64,000 bases of DNA from Ramazzottius varieornatus (Eukaryota > Animalia > Tardigrada), in the NCBI GenBank assembly GCA_001949185.1, contig BDGG01000003.1:907577-971576 (forward strand), read 5' to 3'. Position 1 is the stretch's first letter. Each line of letters begins with the position of its first letter. The notes beneath the pieces were generated by a model. That model was not told where the DNA came from, made no database searches, and worked only from the letters and a program-made list of their open reading frames with translations. Made by a program: the position numbers and the translations under genes. Positions 1,677-53,091 of the stretch are shown in pieces.

Positions 1677-4053
1677 ATGGTGTGGATAACTGATTATTGT
1701 CCCGATGCAGCATTGGACGTTGTACTGCGCTTTCCACTTGCCCTGCTGCTCGACCACATTCTGGGGACGCTATGGCTCCAGTCCGATCAGGCCAGCCTTC
1801 AGTCAACCGTTCCTCCCTCCACAAAAGGCAAGGATGCACTAGCCGTTACACCATTGGCCGATTGGACAAGCTTGACATATTACGCACAATCCAAACTCTT
1901 CCTGATAACCGGTATATAAGTCAATATTCGTTGTCATTTTGAGCCTTCATGCGGCGACCATTTTGTGTTTTTCCATAGCTGCGTTCACCTGCTGGATGAC
2001 CGTCAAGTTCCTTCCCCGCTCCCAACTTCTCCTGTTCGCCGTATTCCTCGAAGGCTTGGCCGTCTTTTGCAGCATACTGCTCATCAACCTCTCTCTACCG
2101 GCAGTTACATTCAGCACGGCCATCGGTGCCATGGTCCTAGTTAACTTCCTCCACGCTCAGCTGATCAGTGATCTTCGGCACCTTCGCTTCTTCGAAATCG
2201 TTGCTGTACCGTCGCTGGCTGGAGTCATCGGCTCGCGTAGCTCCAACATTGCCCAAAGCCCCTGGCTCAACATCTGGCCTTGCTTGCCTTTGCTGGTCAT
2301 TTGTGCACGCACACTGGAAGCAACAGGTGTTCGTACACTATCTTACCGATATTTTCCTCCATGTTGAAACTTATAATTATATACTATTTCATGGAGTCAT
2401 CTATAGGTATGACTGTAAGCACGGAAGCATTCAGCACTACCTACTTGCTACTGGCGTGGACGCTAGCCGCTCCGGTCGGCTGGTTTCTGCTCGACGGGCT
2501 GCGGTGGCGGTTGTATGCAGCCAGACAGTCGCTCAGCGCTCGTTACCGACCGGGAATAAGGCTCTCGGTGATTGGCTCCTACTACGCTTGCATCGATAAC
2601 TTCCACTGGCAGTCGGTCGGTGAAGAAGCGGTCAATGCAGCTTACGTAGCAGTGTGGACCAGCAAAGTCTTCTATGAGGTCGGCACATCCCTAACAAGGT
2701 AACGTCATCTACTGTAGTAGCGATGCCTTTTATAAATTCCTATGTCAATGATGATCTATTCTTTCAAAAGGACGACAAGTTCTGCGGCTCTGGCCAACGT
2801 CCTGTCCGCCCTGCTGGCCGCCACTGTATCCTCCTACGTTTCGCTCTTTGGTTTCTGTTGGATCGTCGGCCACATCTACCGCGAGATCTCCAGCAAGTGG
2901 CTCTCCTCGGTCGACGTCATCCTAACATCGCCACAACTCAGTGCACAAGAGATGCAGCGTTTCGACTTCTCCGGCCATCTTTTCGTCTTTGCCTACCAAG
3001 GCAACCTGCTGGTCGACCCAGCCAACAGCTCCAGCATCGACCCACTGACACGTCTCTTAGCCTTCCTGTTGCTCTATCGTCTTGCCCAAATACCCGACCA
3101 CGTTCGCGCCTACTCACACGCCATCTCGGTCGAAGGGACTGGTCCGCGGCAGTATTATGCCCGAGCGTTGATCGAAGGTGCCATCACACCATGCTTGCTG
3201 GGGCTGGCGCTGCTACCTCGAGTGTGGCGAGTTACCAATGCACCGACAGATCTGCTGTCGGCGGTGTGGAACAGGAATATTTCAACGGGTTTCCCAGCAG
3301 AGTTCGAACTTTGGCTACACTCCGAAACGTTATTTTCCGCAGGTAAACTTTGGCCTTGGGCACAAAACATTGGTTCCTTAACGATTAGACTGACTGAAGG
3401 GACTTTTAGGTGATCTGGTAGTGGCGGTGATCGTCGCGGGCTTGAGTACCATTGCTTATCCGCGCCAACAGGTGACAGACGAGGCGGGCATTTCGGCCCA
3501 TTTCTGGCATGGATATTTGGGTACCGTCGACTACGGTAGCAAAGTTTACTCCCAAATCGTTCGCGAACTGGCCGGTATCATCGTCCATTTCGTCATCATG
3601 ACGCTGATGTTCGAACACCTCTGGCGAGTAACGGTCACCGATGAGCAGGACGCCACGATGTTGGGTTGGTACGAAGTGGTCAACTTTCTGGTGTACTTCG
3701 GACGGTACGCTGACGGGAACGTTCGCTTCTCTTACACGACCCAACACGGTATCGTCAGTGACGCGGTGTGCTCCTACAAGTGTGTCATCAGAGAACTGCC
3801 TTCGCCGGATGAGGAAGCGCATAAGGCCTGGGAGGACTGTTGTGGTATATGTTACGACAATGAAGAGGACCGACTGAAGCTGTGTGTCTTTCCCTGTCTG
3901 CATTTCTTCCATCGAGATTGTATTGGAGAGTGGTTGAAGATGAGGATGGTCTGTCCCATGTGTATGCGCAAAGTGTGGTTCGACAGAGGCTCGGTCAAGA
4001 TGGACAATATGGTGGCGCCACCAGCTGATCCACCTTTGCCTGTGACTGACTGA
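1677..4053 (+). CDS. TRC8/RNF139/RNF145-like multi-pass ER RING-H2 E3 ubiquitin ligase (5 exons)
   Basis: Exons 1677-1911, 1979-2326, 2407-2698, 2771-3342 and 3410-4053 join in phase through GT-AG introns. N-terminal AALDVVLRFPLALLLDHIL resembles the TRC8_N start (AALEVALRVPCLYIIDAIF). There are many hydrophobic segments and a C-terminal RING-H2, CGIC..CLHFFHRDC..W..CPMC. Confidence 0.85.
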
Positions 4054-4688: not shown

Positions 4689-7600
4689 ATGACCAGCAAT
4701 GGCTTTCAACGTGTGCCGACAACCGATCCAGACAACGATGAACAAGACGGAGATGTCGTTCCCCCCATGGTGAGTACTGCACAATGTTCAGCTGCAAGTG
4801 CAAGCCATCAGGTGGTTTACACGGCCAGGAGTTCATGCTGTCGGTGTTGCAGAACCAGGCGTCGCTGAGGCCGACACGCGTCTCCCGCGTCCACTATGAC
4901 GAGTCAGCTCTGCTTCGACCGCCCCAGACGCACTTGCCAGCCTTGTATGAAGAGGGAGGACCAAGACGTCCAGCACGCAAAAGCACCATCGAGACCTACC
5001 TTGATGAAGAAACCCGCCCAGCGCCCACTCGACGTATTTCGCTGGCTCGCAAATCCAGGACGGAACGACCAGACTTGGACGAACTCAAGAAGGAAATTCG
5101 CATTGTAGGTCGGGCTTTTCCCAGAAATAATGACTATGAATTTTCGGGAATGGTTGATGGGAAAATGTCGATAGGATGAACACACTATTCCACAAGAGAT
5201 CCTGTACGAACGTCTGCGGACCGATCCCTTGAAAGGACTGACCAGTGAGGAAGCGAAGAAACGGCTGGACAAGGATGGACCCAACGAACTGACACCTCCC
5301 GTCGCCGAATCCGAATGGAGGAAGTTTGCCCACCATCTGTTCGGTGGCTTCAGCATGCTACTGTGGATCGGCTTTGTGCTTTGTATGTTGGCTTATGGAC
5401 TGCAGTATTTGACTATGCGCCCTGAGGACATTACGTACGACAATGTAAGTGCAAACAAAGATGACTGGGAAGTCGGCAAATGATTTGAACACGATCGTAG
5501 TTTTTAGGTGGCGCACATTACGTTTGTTACTGGCTGACAGTGTGTGCGCCACTAGGGAAGACGATCGTGTTCAAGTTATTGCGCTTCGATGGTTCGAGAA
5601 TTGGGACTTGCGAGCCTTATCATGCATTCTGCAGTTGTACCTTGGTATCGCTCTGTTACTTGTGGTGGTACTCAGCAGTGTCTTCGCCTACTACCAAGAA
5701 CGCAAGTCGGCCGACATCATGAACTCGTTCAAAAAGATGGTACCAAAGTTCACAACCGTGATCCGCGACGGACAGAGGCAGAGCGTCCACACTGTCGACA
5801 TTGTCAAAGGTGACATCGTCCAAGTGTCGGCCGGTGACACCATGCCCGCTGACATCGTCATCATCGAAGCACAGTCCTTTAAAGTCGACAACTCATCCAT
5901 CACCGGCGAGTCCGAAGCCCAGATTCGTACGCCTAAATTCACCAGCGACAATCCACTGGAATCAAAGAACCTGGCTTTCTTCTCGACGAATGCCATGCAA
6001 GGCACAGCTATCGGCGTGGTGATTTACACTGGGGATAATACTGTAATTGGTAGAGTGGCCAACCTTGCCAGTAACGTCGAACATGTGCCGACACCGCTGT
6101 CGAAGGAGCTGGATCATGTCATTTTGGTCTCGACTTCCATCGCTTTTCTGATTGGTGGGATATTCTTCATCCTGTCGCTCATCTATGGCTTCCATTGGCT
6201 GGACTCCATGATCTTCTTGATTGGTTTGATTGTGGCGTACGTCCCCGAAGGTCTGCAGATGACCGTCACGGTACGAGAATACTTCCGTCGGAGCATCATT
6301 GCGGTTTCAAGACACGTGACATAATCGTTGATATTGCAGATTTGTTTGACGCTGACCGCGAGAAGGATGGCGAAGAAGAATTGCCTGGTGAAAAATCTCG
6401 ATGCGGTAGAAACGCTGGGCTCAACGTCAATCATCTGTACGGACAAGACCGGCACGTTGACACAGAACCGAATGACCGTTGCGCATGTGTGGATGGACAA
6501 CAACATTGCGCTAGCCGACACCACCGAAGACCGCAGCGGTGAGCACCGTGAATCGCAGTAGCTCTAGTTTTCCCCTTCAAACATATCTTAAGCGAATTAG
6601 ATCGGCGGTTGATGCTTGTAGCGCATCTTGATGAAGCGTACATTTTTCTACAGGTTTGAGTACGATCGATGTGGAATCACCGACATGGCATGCGTTCAAC
6701 CAGGTAGCCCGGTTGTGCAACAATGCCGAGTTCCTACCTGACCAGGAAGACAAACCAATTGTGGAACGGCTGGTCAAGGGAGATGCTAGCGAGACCGCCA
6801 TCTACAAGTTTACCGAACTGATGACTCCTGGAGTTGCTCCTTATCGCGCCCAGCACAAGAAGGTTGCCGAAATCCCTTTCAACTCTGCCAATAAATACCA
6901 GGTACAGTACGCAATATCGATGCATCACCAATGCGGTTTCCTGAGGTCGAAGACTTGGAGTACATACGACATTTTTGTACGTCAATTTCCCACTACAGGT
7001 ATCCATCCACCAGCGAGATGATGGTCCGGGCCACTTGCTGGTGATGAAAGGCGCACCCGAACGTATCCTCAAGATGTGCAGTACTGTCCTGATCAACGGT
7101 CAGGACGTCCCACTGGACACCAACACGACTATCCACTACAATGCCGCCTATGAGAAGCTGGGCGAAATGGGCGAGCGTCTCCTCGGTCTTTGCCGCTACG
7201 ATCTGCCTATCGACCAGTTCCCAGATGGCTACCCATTCGACACTGAAGAAGTCAACTTTCCAATGTCCAACCTACAGTTCGTCGGACTGGTTGCCTTGAT
7301 CGACCCTCCACGGGCCTCCGTTCCAGAAGCCGTTCAGAAATGTCGCAAGGCCGGCATCAAAGTCATCATGGTTACTGGCGATCACCCTATTACGGCCAAG
7401 GCCATCGCCCGACAAGTGGGCATCATTTCGGAAGGCGTACTTACAGCTCAAGAGGTCAGTTTCTCTCATCATCGAAGGTTATCTTTCCTGAAGAATGTCA
7501 GAGCCAATTTCAGAGCCGGCCACTGTATTGGTATCCGCATATTTTCTCGCAGTTGAAACAGTCCAGTCCAATGCGACGACGACGTGGTCACACCAGCGCC

Positions 7601-9008
7601 ACTGCTCAGGCAACGGTCATCCACGGAGACGAACTGCGCTACATGACCGAGGACGAACTGCAGCACGTTCTTAGAGCTTACTCTGAGATAGTATTCGCAA
7701 GGACCTCACCGACGCAGAAGCTCAGAGTCGTGGAAGGATGCCAAAAGATGGGTGCCATTGTGGCCGTGACTGGTGACGGTGTAAATGACTCGCCGGCCTT
7801 GTCCAAAGCCGACATCGGTATCGCCATGGGTATCGCAGGAAGTGAGGTAAGCAAACAGGCAGCGGATATGATCTTAATGGATGACAACTTTGCATCGATC
7901 GTCACCGGCGTGGAGGAAGGCCGGGTTATTTTCGACAACCTGAAGAAGGCTATTGTGTACACGCTGACGTCGAAGGGTCCTGAAACCTTACCATTCATCT
8001 GCTTCATCCTGTTCGATCTGCCTTTGGCACTGGGAACCGCCATGATCTTGCTGATTGATTTCTCCACTGACTTGGTAAAGAAATTAAAGAGACCAATCGA
8101 TCAACCGAAAGATGCATGACTATTCTTATTTTTTTTACAGCTTCCCGCCATTTCGCTGGTTCACGAAAAAGAAGAGAAAGACGTCATGCGGCGACCACCC
8201 CGCGATCCCCAAAACGACCATCTGGTTACCAGTGCTTTACTGCAAAAAGCCTACTTCCAGTCCGGTATCATTGAAGGTCTCGGTGGTCTCTTCGCCTTCT
8301 TCGTCGTACTGGGAGAGAATGGCTTCTGGCCACGAACGTTATTCGGCATCCGACCGGAATGGGACAATCCGCTGGACGATGCAGTCGTCGATGCCTACGG
8401 CCAGGAATGGGTAAATTTGGTATTTCGATCGGAAGCCCTCACTACGATACTTCAATGCCTATTCGCTTCTTCAGAACTACCGACAACGGAAAGTGCTGGA
8501 ACAAACGGGGCAAACTGCCTACTTCCTTGCTGTGGTGTTCATCCAGTGGTTCAATGTGTTGACTTGCCGGTCGAGACGTTACTCTATCTTTTCTTACGGA
8601 ATGAAGTAAGTTTCCCACTGTCGCGAGACGCGGAATTAAGTTTGTCAAATATCGACCCTACGTTATTCTGCAACGCTGACTGCTTTTCAGGAACTGGGTG
8701 TTGAATTTCTCGCTGATATTTGAGTTTGGAATGGCCATGTTCCTTGTCTTTACACCAGGAATGGAAGTTGCTCTGCGCTTCCGGCCACTGAGGTAACTGT
8801 GCGCCCGACTTCAGCTTACAGATTACCTTAGACTGATGAGGCGGCTCGGCCTGATGCATAGTGACTAAAGAAACATTTTGGCCGCAGGTGGATGTGGTTC
8901 TTCCCGGGGATTCCTTTCGGTATTTACCTACTTGCTTACGATGAAATCCGCAAGTACATCCTTAGGCACGACCCCAAAGGCTTCATAGCCCGAGAAACGT
9001 ACTGGTAG
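4689..9008 (+). CDS. P2C-type Na+/K+-ATPase alpha subunit (divergent paralogue)
   Basis: Exons 4689-4769, 4853-5104, 5175-5444, 5635-6270, 6340-6538, 6654-6901, 6999-7454, 7553-8074, 8141-8410, 8475-8605, 8691-8792 and 8888-9008. Motifs: [63 protein letters not shown], and C-terminal ETYW. Confidence 0.95.
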
Positions 9009-10591: not shown

Positions 10592-11263
10592 CTTTGTAAT
10601 CCACTTTCAAGATCAACATAATCAACGGAGTCTTACGGCCTGTCGTGAGGAGGACTATTGCTAGTTCATCTTGTTCTGGGCCCTACGGGCCTACGTTTTC
10701 TGGCTTTGGTTCGACGGTCTGCTAAGAGTTTACCACATAGCATAGTCGCAGCCAGAACGGACATTTTTTTCTGGACAGACTGAGACCTAAAACCCTTATA
10801 CAACAACAAATTTCTCCAGCTAGTGGATATAATGCCCTGTCACCCCACCCGAGCGAGACCGGCGCTGTAGATGTTCCAACTGCTCCCCTACTCGAATCAG
10901 CATATTATTCTGTCTAATTACGCACAGCATACTTTACATACCGTACATCAGGTGTTTGAACGCCGGGAGCTTCCGTGCTTGACATTTACAGTGTAATACC
11001 ACAGCATTTATTTACGCAGGCGAAGCAAAGCTTAGCGCTCCGACTGATTCATACTACATCCCGGACGAGCGTATGCGCTGCGCAGTCATGCGAAAACTTC
11101 CTTCGGGGAACGGAAGTAGCTGTGGGTGGATGCGAACACACATCCCACTGAAACAATTAGATGGATGCTGGAAAACGTAAAATATCATCTTTTAGCCCAA
11201 CCTTTTAGCCGACAAGGCAGAAGCAAATTCGAACTGTCTTTTAACGTGCGCCCTGAAGTAACA

Positions 11264-47760: not shown

Positions 47761-50309
47761 ATGAAGCCGAAGAATGGGAACGAACCGGGGAAAGGCAGCC
47801 AGGTGAAGTTCAACCCGAAGCTAAAGAAGGAGATGCAGAACGCCAAGGAGACGCGAAACCATAACCGAGTGCTTCAGGATGATCGCTTTTCTCGGATAGC
47901 TACTGACCCGCGTTTCCGTGGACTTCCAGCGGAGGAGAAGAAGATCCAGATTGATGACCGTTTCGAGTCGATGTTCACCGACAAGCGCTTCAATCAGAAA
48001 CATACGGTGGACAAACGCGGACGACCTGTCAATTTTGCTTCTTCCGATTCAATCCAAAAGTTTTACGAGCTTAGTGACAAGTCCGGGAAGAAGAAGGCCA
48101 GTCAGTCCGCCAACGACCGATTCAAACTTCCTGACGGTAGGCGATTCAAAAGGCTGCCTGTAGAATCTCCTTCAGAAATTGCGACAGTATTTCCGACAGG
48201 TTTAACATGGAGACATCGCCTGATTCTTGATTGATGACCTGTGTGATGGATTGCTGATTGATTCGGCTTTTGCGTGCAACGCTTGTTTCGTGTTTTGAAA
48301 TGTTCCTCATATCTTGCAGGTGATGGGACCGACGAAGATACTTCTGACGAGGAAGAAGATGACAATAATAATGCCGGTAGAGATTTTTCTCGGGGAAAGG
48401 GAAACGTGGAAAGCAGTTCGTCAGAAGAGTCGACAGATGAAGATGAAGACGGCCCTATCAGCAAAGGCGAGGAGATCGAGGAGATCGAGCATCCCTGGGC
48501 CGAACTAGCAAACGACGCTCCATCAACCGATGAAGTTACCAACCGACTAGCCTTGGTCAACATGGACTGGGAAAACATCCGTCCAGAAGACATTTTCGCT
48601 TTGTTGAACTCATTCAAACCAACGAATGGTTCAATCGAGTCCATCACAATCTACCCTTCTGAGTACGGCAAAGCAAAGATGGCGGAAGAAGGCACGAAAG
48701 GACCGTTAGAGTATGAAGCCCCTAAGAACGGCGAAGAGGAAGAGGAAGACGATTTAGACGCTGATTTGGACAGCGAAGAATATCGAAAGAAAGCCACGGA
48801 GAAGCTACGCAAGTACCAGCTGAACCGTCTGAAGTACTACTACGCAGTGGTGGTTTGCGACAGTAAGGAAACAGCCAACAAGGTTTACGAGGAATGTGAT
48901 GGGTTGGAGTACGAGAATTCGTCCACGGTGGTCGATCTGAGGTTCGTGCCGGACGAAATGGAGTTTGACGACAGCGAAGCCAAAAGTACCGTCAAGAACC
49001 TTCCGGCCAACTACCAGCCAGCCGAGTTTGTCAGCACGGCACTCCAGCAGTCCAAAGTCAGATGTTCGTGGGACGAAACGGCCAGAGATCGGCAGGGGCT
49101 GGGGAAGTTGGTGGACTGGGCGAAAATGGACGATATCCAGGTAAAATAAACCGTCTGTTGGAAAACGGTCTTAGTAGCGAATGGCGTCAACCGTCTGTCT
49201 GGTGCGCAACCGTAAATTAGAACCGTGCGTTATGCTTTTGCTAGCCCACAGTGACTAGGTGATATTTACGGTATGCGGTTCGAATGTGGCGGTCAGCGGT
49301 TTCTCGCTTTCTATGTTCTAACTTGTTGAAATTGCAGTTTTGTTTTTGTAGCTTCTCGTTGGGTTGTGTTGAATGGTGGTTCATGTTTTGTATGTTGTAG
49401 GCTTACCTGGCAAGTTCGTCTTCTGAACAAGATGCGGGAGACGTGGACGATGTGGATAACGATACGCGGTCAGTTCGCTCAACGAAGGACCCGGAAGCAA
49501 TTGAACGGTATCGAGCGCTGATTCTCGAACGGGATTCCAAAGACAAGTCAAAGAAAAAAGACACGCTGTCCGATGAGAGCGATGTCGATCTGGAAGTTGA
49601 TTGGGAACCTGGTGTGAAAACATCGACAGAAATCGCGCTGAACGAACAGAAGAAGAGGGCAGAAGTCAGTCAGTTAACGCCTTTTGAGAAAATACTCGAG
49701 AAACAAAAGCTGAGACGGAAGAATAAAAAGCTGGAGAAGTCCGAGAAGAAGAGCATTAAAGTAGCAAGGATGGAAGATGAAGAGGAGGAAAGTGACGATG
49801 ACTTGGAAGGTTCGTCCGAAGATGAAGAAGAGGAAGAAGAGGAGGAAGATGAGGAAGATGATAGTGAAGAAGAGGAAGGGGAACATGAAGCCGAGAAAGA
49901 AAAAGCTGACTTGGAATTGTTGGTGCAAGATGACAAAGATTCGAAGCGGCATTTCAGTCTGAAGAAGCTGATGAGAGACGGCGGGGAAGTCTCCAAGACC
50001 AAGAAAAAACAGTTGAGGAAGAAGAGGAAAGCTGGTGAAGCGGCGGAAGAACCCGAAGATGGCTTCCAGATGGATCTGAAAGACGAACGATTTGAGGCGC
50101 TCTTCACGTCCAACCAGTACAACGTCGACATGTCCGATCCTGCCTTCAAGAAGACCAAAGCTATGGATGCTTTGATCAAAGAAAAGCTGCAACGAGTCAA
50201 GAACGGAGAAAGGGGAGGAGAAAAGAAGAAGGGGACGATGGTGGTCCGACCGGAAATATCCTTGTTGGCCGAATCTGTCCAAGCGAAAACTAGAAGCAGT
50301 AAAAAGTAA
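47761..50309 (+). CDS. ESF1: ESF1 homologue (nucleolar pre-rRNA processing protein)
   Basis: DPRF..IDDRF..VDKRGR, TNRLALVNMDWE, LRKYQLNRLKYYYAVV, DLRFVPD, AYLASS, and the NUC153 motif DERFEALF..DPAFKKT. Introns about 48137-48319 and 49141-49400. Confidence 0.92.
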
Positions 50310-50604
50310 TAGTTATTTATTCTTCTTCCGTGAAGTCAAGCACTGGCTTCTCGTTTCACATGTTTTTCTTCGTCTTTTGTACCAATTTCTGATTAACGAC
50401 GAGAAAAGGAAAAAATGGGATTGTGAAGTTATCACATTTTGTTTTGCAACAGGTCCGTATCTAGGTGAAACCAAAATGGTATTCGCACGAGGGAATATGT
50501 CGATAGTGTATTGAAAGAACGAAGATCAGACAAAAACGCAAAACAACGATTGGTGCGAAATGGAGGCTTCAGGCTTGAATGACTGGTCAAAACTAGTCGG
50601 TAGA

Positions 50605-50940
50605 TTAGCCGGTCGCGCCCATGTTTTTCAGGTACTCTATCAAGTGTCGATCTTGCCTTTCTCTGGCAACTTCAAGAGCGGTTTTGAAATGACCGTCGTC
50701 TTTGAGGGGGAGGCTGTCGTTGACGCTGAAGACTCGGCTGGCGAAAATGGCGTTGAGAATGATGATGTCTTGCCGAGGTTGTGCGGGCGGCGTTGGTAGG
50801 TGTAAGTCGGAGACTGTCAAGAGCCAGGCCACGAACCTCTTAGTGTCGGGCAAAGTCCAGTCGTCACAAACCGTGGGATCCAAGGAAAGCTGGCGGACGA
50901 GGTCGCCGAAGAGAGCATTGGTAGTCACACCTGCTGCCAT
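50605..50940 (-). CDS. 111-aa intronless single-ankyrin protein, truncated paralogue of the gene at 53735
   Basis: DLVRQLSLDP..DW matches DLIRQIFLDP..DW, and TALEVA..LIEYLKNMGA matches TALSLS..LIKYLRKVGA. The AAGATGG start context is also shared. Confidence 0.65.
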   Translation of the reverse strand: MAAGVTTNALFGDLVRQLSLDPTVCDDWTLPDTKRFVAWLLTVSDLHLPTPPAQPRQDIIILNAIFASRVFSVNDSLPLKDDGHFKTALEVARERQDRHLIEYLKNMGATG

Positions 50941-53091
50941 CTTCGGTAGCTGTTCTCAGAAGAATCAAGGATCCCTTCTTGGAGAAGATATCTGAAACGT
51001 GTTGAGATTTGGTCGGGAATTTAAATTCAACTTTACTGTACATCTAAACGCCTTCGTGGGCGAAGTTCGAATGCTTTTCTTTCGGGAGGAGCCATGTGGT
51101 TTCATTGGTGATAGCTCTTCCTTTCTGTGGTCCGAAGCGAGGTAAGTCGTACGATTTACAGGTAGCTAGCGGTGTGAAGTACAGGTGAGGCCTTTGCCTA
51201 ATTACTTGGAGTGCAGGAAGCTTTGTGGTGCGAGGTTACTGGACATTTGACCGACAGGAAGTGCAGGGGGGATACTGACGTGTGAGTTGGTGTAGGAAAA
51301 TTACAGCTTGACCGAGTTTGCCGAGTCCTTTTATTCTATCAATTTAGAGTAACGTCTGAATAAATATTCCTCGCTACCGGGTAGTGATGTCGGCATAAGG
51401 GTATCGCGACCTAATATAATCTTGATTTAATAAGCCCGGGCTGCCAGAGTTCCAATAAAATCTTAATACAATATGCCCCGACCGCAGAGCATCTAATATA
51501 ATGTCAATATATTAAGTTATGTCGCTGGGTTCTTATTATAATATATTATTATATTTCTGTCATTTCTAGATCCATGTGTCAACGGGAAAAGATAACTTTC
51601 TTCCTCAACAATCTCATCATTAAAGCAGTTTTATCTAGATCCAGCAATAAAGGTCATGAATTATCAGTTAAAAGTACTACCAAGGAACCGTCCTAAAATA
51701 ACAGCAGTTTTAGCAGCTGTTATCTCTTCGGGCTGGTGTTCGAGGAATTCCTTTCTTTCAAGCCGTTCTTTCAAGCGCGATTCTGCAAACGCATTGCAGG
51801 ATCGCGCTGAAATGCATTGTTTACAGCGCGATTGGCGGGTACGCAACTGAGTCCCCGAAATCGTAGTCCTGCACTCACCAATCAAATCAGCTGCTTCAAT
51901 CAAGTCACCACATTCGAACGTTCGTGAGTCTATCACACGCGCCGGTGGGTGATGCGCAAAATGTACTGGCACACAGCACACTGCACACAGTTTCACGCTT
52001 ATTGCGGACGCAAATCAAGCATCACTTTAATCAACCGAAGCCAAAATCCGCATTTTGATAATTTTAATATGGAGCGCCTTGCGGCTTGATTTTAACATGA
52101 TAATACTAGCTCTGGCTTTCATCTAATTTGATACTGATAAATATTCCCCCTCGGCCGAGGCATCTAATAAATGTTAATGCAAAAAGCATCTAATAAGTTC
52201 TAATTTAGTATAATACTCATATATGTCAACATCACTACTACCGGACGTAAAACTTTGTATCGAGGTGTTCATCGGGAGTTCTACGGAGGTGACTGCCATA
52301 TATCTTGAGCCGATATTCTTGGGCATTTTGCCCTTTGTAGGAAAACCTTTGCAACAAACGAGAAATCGTAAGTTTCGCTTATTCGATGAGGGTCGGGAAA
52401 CCAATAGCAAACCGTAGTTCCATGAAGAAAGCTTAAGCTAGCTGCAAATGTAGAATGTTTCAAAGCTGAAGATTTAGCGTGCGAAACAGAAGAAAAGGAT
52501 CTGGGGTGAGATGGTTACCGTAAGAGAATTTTCCTGACACTGAAATGCACTCATCTCAGATGCACGCGTAAAGATTGGGTGGCTTTTATATCTTTCCTAC
52601 TCACGCACGCAGAAGAGAGCTCATGTTACCTGCCTGTGACTTTTCACGTAATCGTCATGACGTCATGCGCTTCTCGAATGTAAGCCTGGGATTATTCTGG
52701 CCTGGTAGTACGTCTGCGTACGTCACACGGCTCTCGCCACGACAGCCTGGGATAATTCCGTTAACACATTAAAGAGTTTGATACGGAACTCGAGCAGCGC
52801 AAGAAATCCGAGTAGCGTAAAACTCTGGCCCCTCCCATTCCTTACTCTAATCGGCTGAGGTTGAGACCCGCTCCGCAATCCAGCCGACTAGCGTAACTTC
52901 ACCGGAAGGTTTTGCAAAACCTCCATCAGTTTTCGTGATTAATGACTTTTCGGTAAGATGCGATGTCGAATCACACGAAGTGTCCAGTTCTAATACAGCA
53001 ACGGAAAAAGTGATTTCCAGTTCCGACTGCTTAAAGCTCAAGTGAATCTTGATACGAAAAGCAGCAGCTAAAGGCAAAGTAAAATCCAGAA

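Follow-up and report, generated by a model that had tools for sequence, protein, structure and literature searches.

The ion-to-ATP ratio of a P-type pump, and its choice between Na+ and H+, can be studied in only a few natural cases, namely Artemia alpha2KK, the fish alpha1a and the H,K-ATPases, together with engineered mutants. A locus of the tardigrade Ramazzottius varieornatus raises the question of whether nature has produced a further case. It lies in a stretch of 64,000 nucleotides (contig BDGG01000003.1, positions 907,577 to 971,576 of the forward strand; hereafter the window, to which coordinates refer unless otherwise given) from a genome of 55.8 Mb in 200 contigs, and it holds the gene RvY_06737, whose exon translations occur letter for letter in the GenBank proteins RvY_06737-1 to RvY_06737-4 (GAU95056-95059) under an annotation that is only generic. 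An earlier note on this DNA had described a Na+/K+-ATPase paralogue with rewired ion-binding sites. The reading favoured here, with reasonable if incomplete confidence, is that RvY_06737 encodes a functional type IIC alpha subunit, a tardigrade duplicate that works as a pump of reduced stoichiometry; judged by its sequence and by analogy with characterised pumps, it would probably move fewer ions per ATP than the usual 3 Na+ : 2 K+.

Three substitutions in the ion-binding pocket carry this reading. Residues are numbered according to pig alpha1 (chains 3wgu/7d91) from phmmer alignments of exons 3, 7 and 9, which are gap-free to the solved pumps across the key stretches. In transmembrane helix 4 (TM4) the codon TAC at 6238-6240 places Tyr at N324 (VAYVPEG), in TM5 the codon AAG at 7973-7975 places Lys at N776 (YTLTSKGPE), and in TM8 the codon AAT at 8553-8555 places Asn at D926 (IQWFN), exactly as the earlier note had read them. 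N324, N776 and D926 are each conserved in at least 95% of 110 canonical pumps, and Tyr, Lys and Asn replace them in both tardigrade species, R. varieornatus and Hypsibius exemplaris. Reading of the exons also upheld that the rest of the machinery is intact: the carboxylate ligands E327, E779, D804 and D808 are all retained, as are the catalytic motifs TGES, DKTGT, KGAPE, DPPR, TGDHP and TGDGVND (exons 3, 4, 6 and 7). S775, P778, W924 and C930 are likewise Na,K-ATPase residues.

Family membership was established by searches run exon by exon (phmmer for structures) and then with the database isoform entries P0395 and P0394. Against TIGR01106 the N-terminally short isoform P0395 reaches 1278.5 bits (cut-off 946.1), compared with 1464 for the H. 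exemplaris orthologue and 1802 for the canonical pump of R. varieornatus; RvY_06737 is therefore a member of this family of X,K-ATPase alpha subunits, yet a divergent one. The full P-type ATPase domain set is present (Pfam PF00690, PF00122, PF13246, PF00702 and PF00689). The exons score better against Na,K-ATPases than against H,K-ATPases, in keeping with the paralogy first proposed, and the best solved-structure match of exon 7 is Artemia alpha2KK, 8k1l (239 bits). The beta-subunit contact motif SYGQ reads AYGQ in RvY_06737; the genome holds two beta-subunit genes (PF00287), along with two canonical alpha genes (TSNIPE...IDLGTDM).

The altered pocket is shared between species. The closest foreign match to P0395 is H. 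exemplaris P0411 (1093 aa, 73% identity, full coverage), a second and partial H. exemplaris copy, P0415, is next, and all pumps outside H. exemplaris are at most 61% identical. P0411 keeps Y324, K776 and N926, the orthologue conservation that the earlier note had proposed to check; its TM4 stretch, TM5 core YTLTSKGPE and TM6 motif IDFSTDL are identical to those of R. varieornatus, while TM8 reads QWIN, TM9 IFEFC and the C-terminus ETYY. The ETYW terminus, put forward earlier as one more departure from canonical pumps, is thus present in R. varieornatus and not conserved, and its terminal Trp is, from this comparison, a peculiarity of that species. Both tardigrade proteins also share L330Q/A331M, I777G, L805F/G806S and T955F, with A925 changed to F or I. 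Among 491 columns near-invariant in the 110 canonical pumps, 81 are altered in both tardigrade proteins, which at 63 of these agree on the new residue; the altered columns include N324Y, L330Q, A331M, N776K, I777G, L805F, G806S, D926N and T955F. Tyr324 and Phe805/Ser806 are confined to the tardigrade clade among approximately 490 retrieved sequences, and the pocket residues are conserved across two tardigrade families. KGPE and IDFSTDL recur in a metagenomic exon open reading frame (ORF), P0151, of 89% identity; among the metagenome contigs scanned, no closer orthologue turned up (best 74%). A loss of TM9 Glu954, as in salmonid alpha1a, was considered as a further change and rejected, the alignment having E954 kept and T955 changed.

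These observations dispose of the simplest objection, also foreseen in the earlier note, that the substitutions reflect an assembly error or a decaying pseudogene. That explanation is refuted by an open frame of 11 exons with canonical splice sites and by the occurrence of the same residues in the independently obtained H. exemplaris genome, with Lys776 found again in the metagenomic ORF.

What the TM5 lysine may do can be gauged from Artemia alpha2KK, whose Lys758 occupies the N776 position, as the earlier note had stated (PMC10756188). The alpha2KK structure locates this lysine within the ion-binding cavity, between sites I and II, where it appears paired with the D804 equivalent and points to site II, leaving too little space for two K+; both alpha2KK lysines, put into canonical Xenopus alpha1, gave a transport of 2 Na+ : 1 K+ (PMC10756188). 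The tardigrade protein resembles the alpha2KK of Artemia franciscana (8k1l) and Daphnia in its Lys at N776, in a non-canonical residue at 324 and in the structural match of exon 7, and it is in the Xenopus alpha1 mimic that the reduced stoichiometry of alpha2KK was measured. It differs in having Tyr at 324, where the branchiopod pumps have Lys, in having Asn for Asp926, whereas the alpha2KK mimic moves 2 Na+, and in its additional G777, F805/S806 and Q330/M331. Nor are the two orthologous, since the tardigrade proteins fall best with the canonical pump of their own lineage.

By this analogy Lys776 would form a tethered positive charge between the shared sites I and II, comparable to Lys758 of Artemia, accompanied by Gly777, by Phe805/Ser806 in TM6 and by Tyr324/Gln330/Met331 in TM4, and Asn926 in TM8 would take away the negative charge of Na+ site III. 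From the pocket lysine and the neutral residue 926, together with the conserved second-shell changes (G777, S806, F805, Y324, Q330 and M331), we infer fewer ions per ATP. The likeliest ratio would be one or two cations out per K+ in, at most 2:1 and possibly an electroneutral 1:1. The retention of every acidic ligand of sites I and II and of all catalytic motifs would also suit an ordinary isoform with 3 Na+ : 2 K+ coupling, whose substitutions would do no more than adjust ion affinities and the response to voltage, and single substitutions at these positions do leave measurable activity in canonical pumps (PMC10756188, PMC13607240). Such an isoform is nevertheless improbable, given the lack of room for two K+ beside the equivalent Lys of alpha2KK, a charge loss at 926 that is specific to site III, and the conservation of the substitutions as a set between species.

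The exchange in TM8 extends the comparison to proton pumps. The Asp of this helix is a ligand of Na+ site III, a point on which the literature agrees with the earlier note, and its exchange for Asn lowers the affinity for Na+ more than 100-fold (PMC13607240, PMC9463140). The same change of Asp to Asn at this site underlies the human disease variants ATP1A3 D923N and ATP1A1 D933N; in the tardigrades, by contrast, Asn is the conserved wild-type state within a co-adapted pocket. H,K-ATPases neutralise the TM8 Asp by an Arg, and the mimic C930R renders the Na+/K+ pump electroneutral (PMC9463140). Strict H+ selectivity has been predicted to need the loss of site III plus a tethered cation at site I (Young et al., PMC9463140). 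A further report describes pumps that, despite disruption of sites I and III, undergo phosphorylation from ATP when Na+ occupies site II (PMC10812997). The gastric proton pump has Tyr340 at the N324 position, in line with what the earlier note had taken as established, and this is one of five positions limiting that pump to one K+ (PMC10756188). A more specific and decidedly tentative reading is that tardigrades independently built a single-site electroneutral pump, which would export one H+ or Na+ per K+ imported by means of a residue set, K776/G777/S806, Y324 and N926, unlike that of vertebrate H,K-ATPases.

Less likely still is that RvY_06737 became a convergent 1 H+ : 1 K+ ATPase, electroneutral and derived from a sodium-pump duplicate. 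The neutral residue 926 combined with a pocket lysine matches the predicted needs of H+ selectivity; vertebrate H,K-ATPases (ATP4A and ATP12A) have both a tethered lysine and a neutralised TM8 Asp, gastric ATP4A shares the Tyr at 324 (VAYVPEG in the tardigrade), and the ostracod sequence P0278 (Darwinula stevensoni) carries N926, M324 and a possible Lys775, although the last is an unchecked reading, the gene model containing an internal duplication. The lysine of the H,K-ATPases, however, stands at 775, whereas that of the tardigrade stands at 776 with S775 kept, and in alpha2KK a lysine so placed points to site II; their TM8 Asp is salt-bridged to Arg at 930, whereas the tardigrade has exchanged the Asp for Asn and kept C930. 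P778 and W924 too are of the Na,K type, so that all four positions separating Na,K- from non-gastric H,K-ATPases (S775, P778, W924 and C930) speak for a sodium pump, as do the lower exon scores against H,K-ATPases, and the double-lysine mimic of alpha2KK still transports Na+ (PMC10756188). The exported ion may be Na+ or H+; the sodium-pump type of those four residues favours Na+.

A reduced-stoichiometry pump also has to be weighed against a protein that no longer pumps and has been retained for some other task, for instance as scaffold, receptor or leak pathway. Its long stem in the tree (1.26 changes per site), the alteration of 16% of near-invariant columns and the presence of two more degenerate alpha-like genes without D804 in the same genome would all accord with lost transport. 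Against this, the protein has kept all its catalytic motifs and every carboxylate of sites I and II, the altered pocket residues are themselves invariant between species and the TIGR01106 score is well over the cut-off, and a non-pumping role is accordingly considered improbable. The two strongly degenerate genes lie outside the window, at G000:C5:962440-963180 (-) and G000:C1:7680384-7681076 (-); their TM5 reads MSN(V/I)PE and their TM6 LLNVVTDM or LICLGTDM, the D804 ligand being lost, and they may be non-canonical or non-pumping relatives.

The origin of the gene was addressed with a tree of 42 sequences, which included no branchiopod or darter sequence. The two-species tardigrade clade has 100% support on its stem, and the free search leaves its position, close to the base of the animal pumps, unresolved; a constraint tree joining it with the tardigrade canonical pump lies 12 lnL above the free search and is not rejected (p-AU 0.83). 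The best reading of these results is a Na,K-ATPase duplicate of the tardigrade lineage followed by fast change: the gene would have been duplicated within that lineage and have diverged rapidly. The clade falls outside the arthropod clade (95% support), which places RvY_06737 apart from the kin of Artemia alpha2KK, as judged from a tree without branchiopod sequences. An ancient Lys-bearing lineage was also considered, as the unicellular Sphaerothecum and Nk52 have Lys776 on long branches that met in the tree; it was rejected because the animal pumps, the tardigrade clade included, form one group (100%) and because a tardigrade-only duplication fits better.

On the same tree Lys776 requires at least 6 changes; besides the tardigrades, its animal carriers there include perch, crayfish, freshwater snail, liver fluke (Clonorchis) and bdelloid rotifer sequences. 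They group with their own relatives, except for the fluke and the rotifer, long-branched sequences that are not placed with certainty; a darter sequence outside the tree also carries Lys776. Pumps with a lysine in the pocket are found in many invertebrates, and the surroundings of the lysine vary: the rotifer P0272 (Didymodactylos carnosus) has K324, K776 and V926, the fluke P0276 (Clonorchis sinensis) M324 and K776, and the crayfish P0327 (Procambarus clarkii) and snail P0343 (Biomphalaria glabrata) K776 alone. In the ostracod P0278, already mentioned with its M324 and N926, TM5 reads YTLTKN, hence the possible Lys at the H,K-ATPase position 775. The TM4 change A331P recurs in fish, fluke and ostracod forms. 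On the evidence of the tree Lys776 has arisen repeatedly, in agreement with the convergence supposed earlier, which suggests a widespread convergent solution.

The distribution of the lysine bears on the physiological role. Lys at position 776 is known from Daphnia and from gill isoforms of freshwater fish, for which Na+ uptake from dilute water has been suggested (Artigas et al., PMC10756188). The freshwater teleost gill type alpha1a is likewise a paralogue with Lys776, from animals that take up Na+ out of dilute water, and the Lys forms of perch and darter are also changed in TM4 (A331P) and in the site III helix (W924V). Jorgensen is said to have described site III changes in salmonids in 2008. 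The fish Lys pumps differ in their independent origin, in keeping N324, in having another change at site III and in being far less divergent than the tardigrade protein.

R. varieornatus and H. exemplaris are active only in fresh water or in water films, and for this reason the preferred guess is that the pump helps to take up or retain ions against a steep gradient. Fewer ions per cycle would allow a steeper gradient to be sustained, and the pump may accordingly serve in ion-transporting epithelia in very dilute water films, in parallel to the Lys pumps of freshwater-fish gill and Daphnia. The earlier note had instead thought of adaptation to salt or drying; nothing in this analysis links the gene to either, and several Lys776 carriers are freshwater animals, which points, with modest confidence, to ion uptake from dilute water as the likelier role.

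The gene itself is longer than first described: the span 6220-9008 given previously covers only TM4 to the stop, whereas the coding sequence begins at 4689 or 4784, depending on the isoform. Reading of the DNA, with a script check of frames and borders, gave 11 coding exons on the + strand, all with GT-AG borders, which when concatenated by script form a single open frame of approximately 1,090 codons ending at the stop TAG 9006-9008. Exon 1 of isoform RvY_06737-1 (4784..5104, donor GT 5105) encodes a long N-terminal tail; its ATG at 4784 sits within an intron of isoform RvY_06737-2, which uses an alternative first coding exon (MTSNGFQRV...PPM) at 4689..4769, spliced to 4853 (GT 4770, AG 4851-4852) and matching the N-terminus of P0277 exactly. 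Exon 2 (5175..5444, ending ...ITYDN, exact in P0277 and P0394) encodes the Cation_ATPase_N region (PF00690) and TM1, and exon 3 (5635..6270) TM2, the A domain with TGES, TM3 and TM4 with Tyr324, L330Q and A331M. Exon 4 (6340..6538) contains the end of TM4 and the phosphorylation motif DKTGT, exon 5 (6654..6901) the first part of the N domain, and exon 6 (6999..7454) the N domain with KGAPE and the P domain with DPPR and MVTGDHP. Exon 7 (7553..8074) continues the P domain and houses TM5, with Lys776 and Gly777, and TM6 (IDFSTDL, with D804, F805, S806 and D808). Exon 8 (8141..8410) encodes TM7 and the TM7-8 loop, where AYGQEW replaces the SYGQ contact motif, exon 9 (8475..8605) TM8 (IQWFNVLTC) with Asn926 and the retained Q923, W924 and C930, exon 10 (8691..8792) TM9 (LIFEFG) with E954 retained, T955F and A956G, and exon 11 (8888..9008) TM10 and the C-terminus ...ARETYW, exact in isoform RvY_06737-3 (P0395).

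This model equals none of the annotated isoforms singly: exons 1-10 are reproduced exactly by isoform 1 and exons 4-11, with the C-terminus, by isoform 3, and introns remain in isoforms 2 and 4. In isoform RvY_06737-1 a GT inside exon 11 (8920/8921) serves as donor, and the transcript continues in an exon at approximately 11025-11177 (+), 2 kb downstream. The splice at 8920 costs the protein its C-terminal tail and the last part of TM10; the join stems either from a merged gene model or from a transcript that is minor or aberrant. Just upstream of the pump gene, at 3421-4053 (+), lies an open frame with a RING-H2 zinc finger (PF13639, E = 2e-9). Elsewhere in the window, the region 48000-52000 is purine-rich on the + strand (GC skew +0.20, AT skew +0.17) and includes, at 49818-49909, a short GAAGATGAA-type repeat that probably encodes an acidic Glu/Asp run.

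Several points weigh against a reduced-stoichiometry pump serving ion uptake. With W924, Q923, Y771, T774, E954 and C930 all retained, weak binding of Na+ at site III may persist. D926N strongly lowers Na+ affinity in an otherwise canonical pump, the Asn mutant of the TM8 Asp having lost it 80- to 135-fold (PMC13607240), and this hardly suits a pump that has to work where cytosolic Na+ is low, unless site III has fallen out of use. Orthologues are known from one tardigrade superfamily only (Macrobiotoidea, Apochela and heterotardigrades not being covered), some annotated isoforms retain introns or have odd C-termini, so that the main product is uncertain, and the habitat argument is correlative. 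Reduced stoichiometry nonetheless remains the explanation preferred here for RvY_06737.

Tethered-lysine pumps are already known; the combination of residues and the tardigrade lineage are new. A full-text literature search brought up no publication about RvY_06737 or about any tardigrade pump with such a lysine, and a tardigrade study lists canonical subunits only (PMC5328964). RvY_06737 offers a natural, conserved combination not found elsewhere among the retrieved sequences, which unites the TM5 lysine of alpha2KK, the Tyr of the gastric pump and the human-disease Asn at site III in one co-adapted pocket. Its expression would directly test the published predictions on tethered cations and site III. 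If the single-site electroneutral reading were true, the protein would be an invertebrate counterpart of the proton/potassium pumps and a natural test of whether loss of site III plus a tethered cation switches selectivity. For tardigrade biology, RvY_06737 provides a first molecular entry point to the way these animals, living in very dilute water films, regulate their ions.

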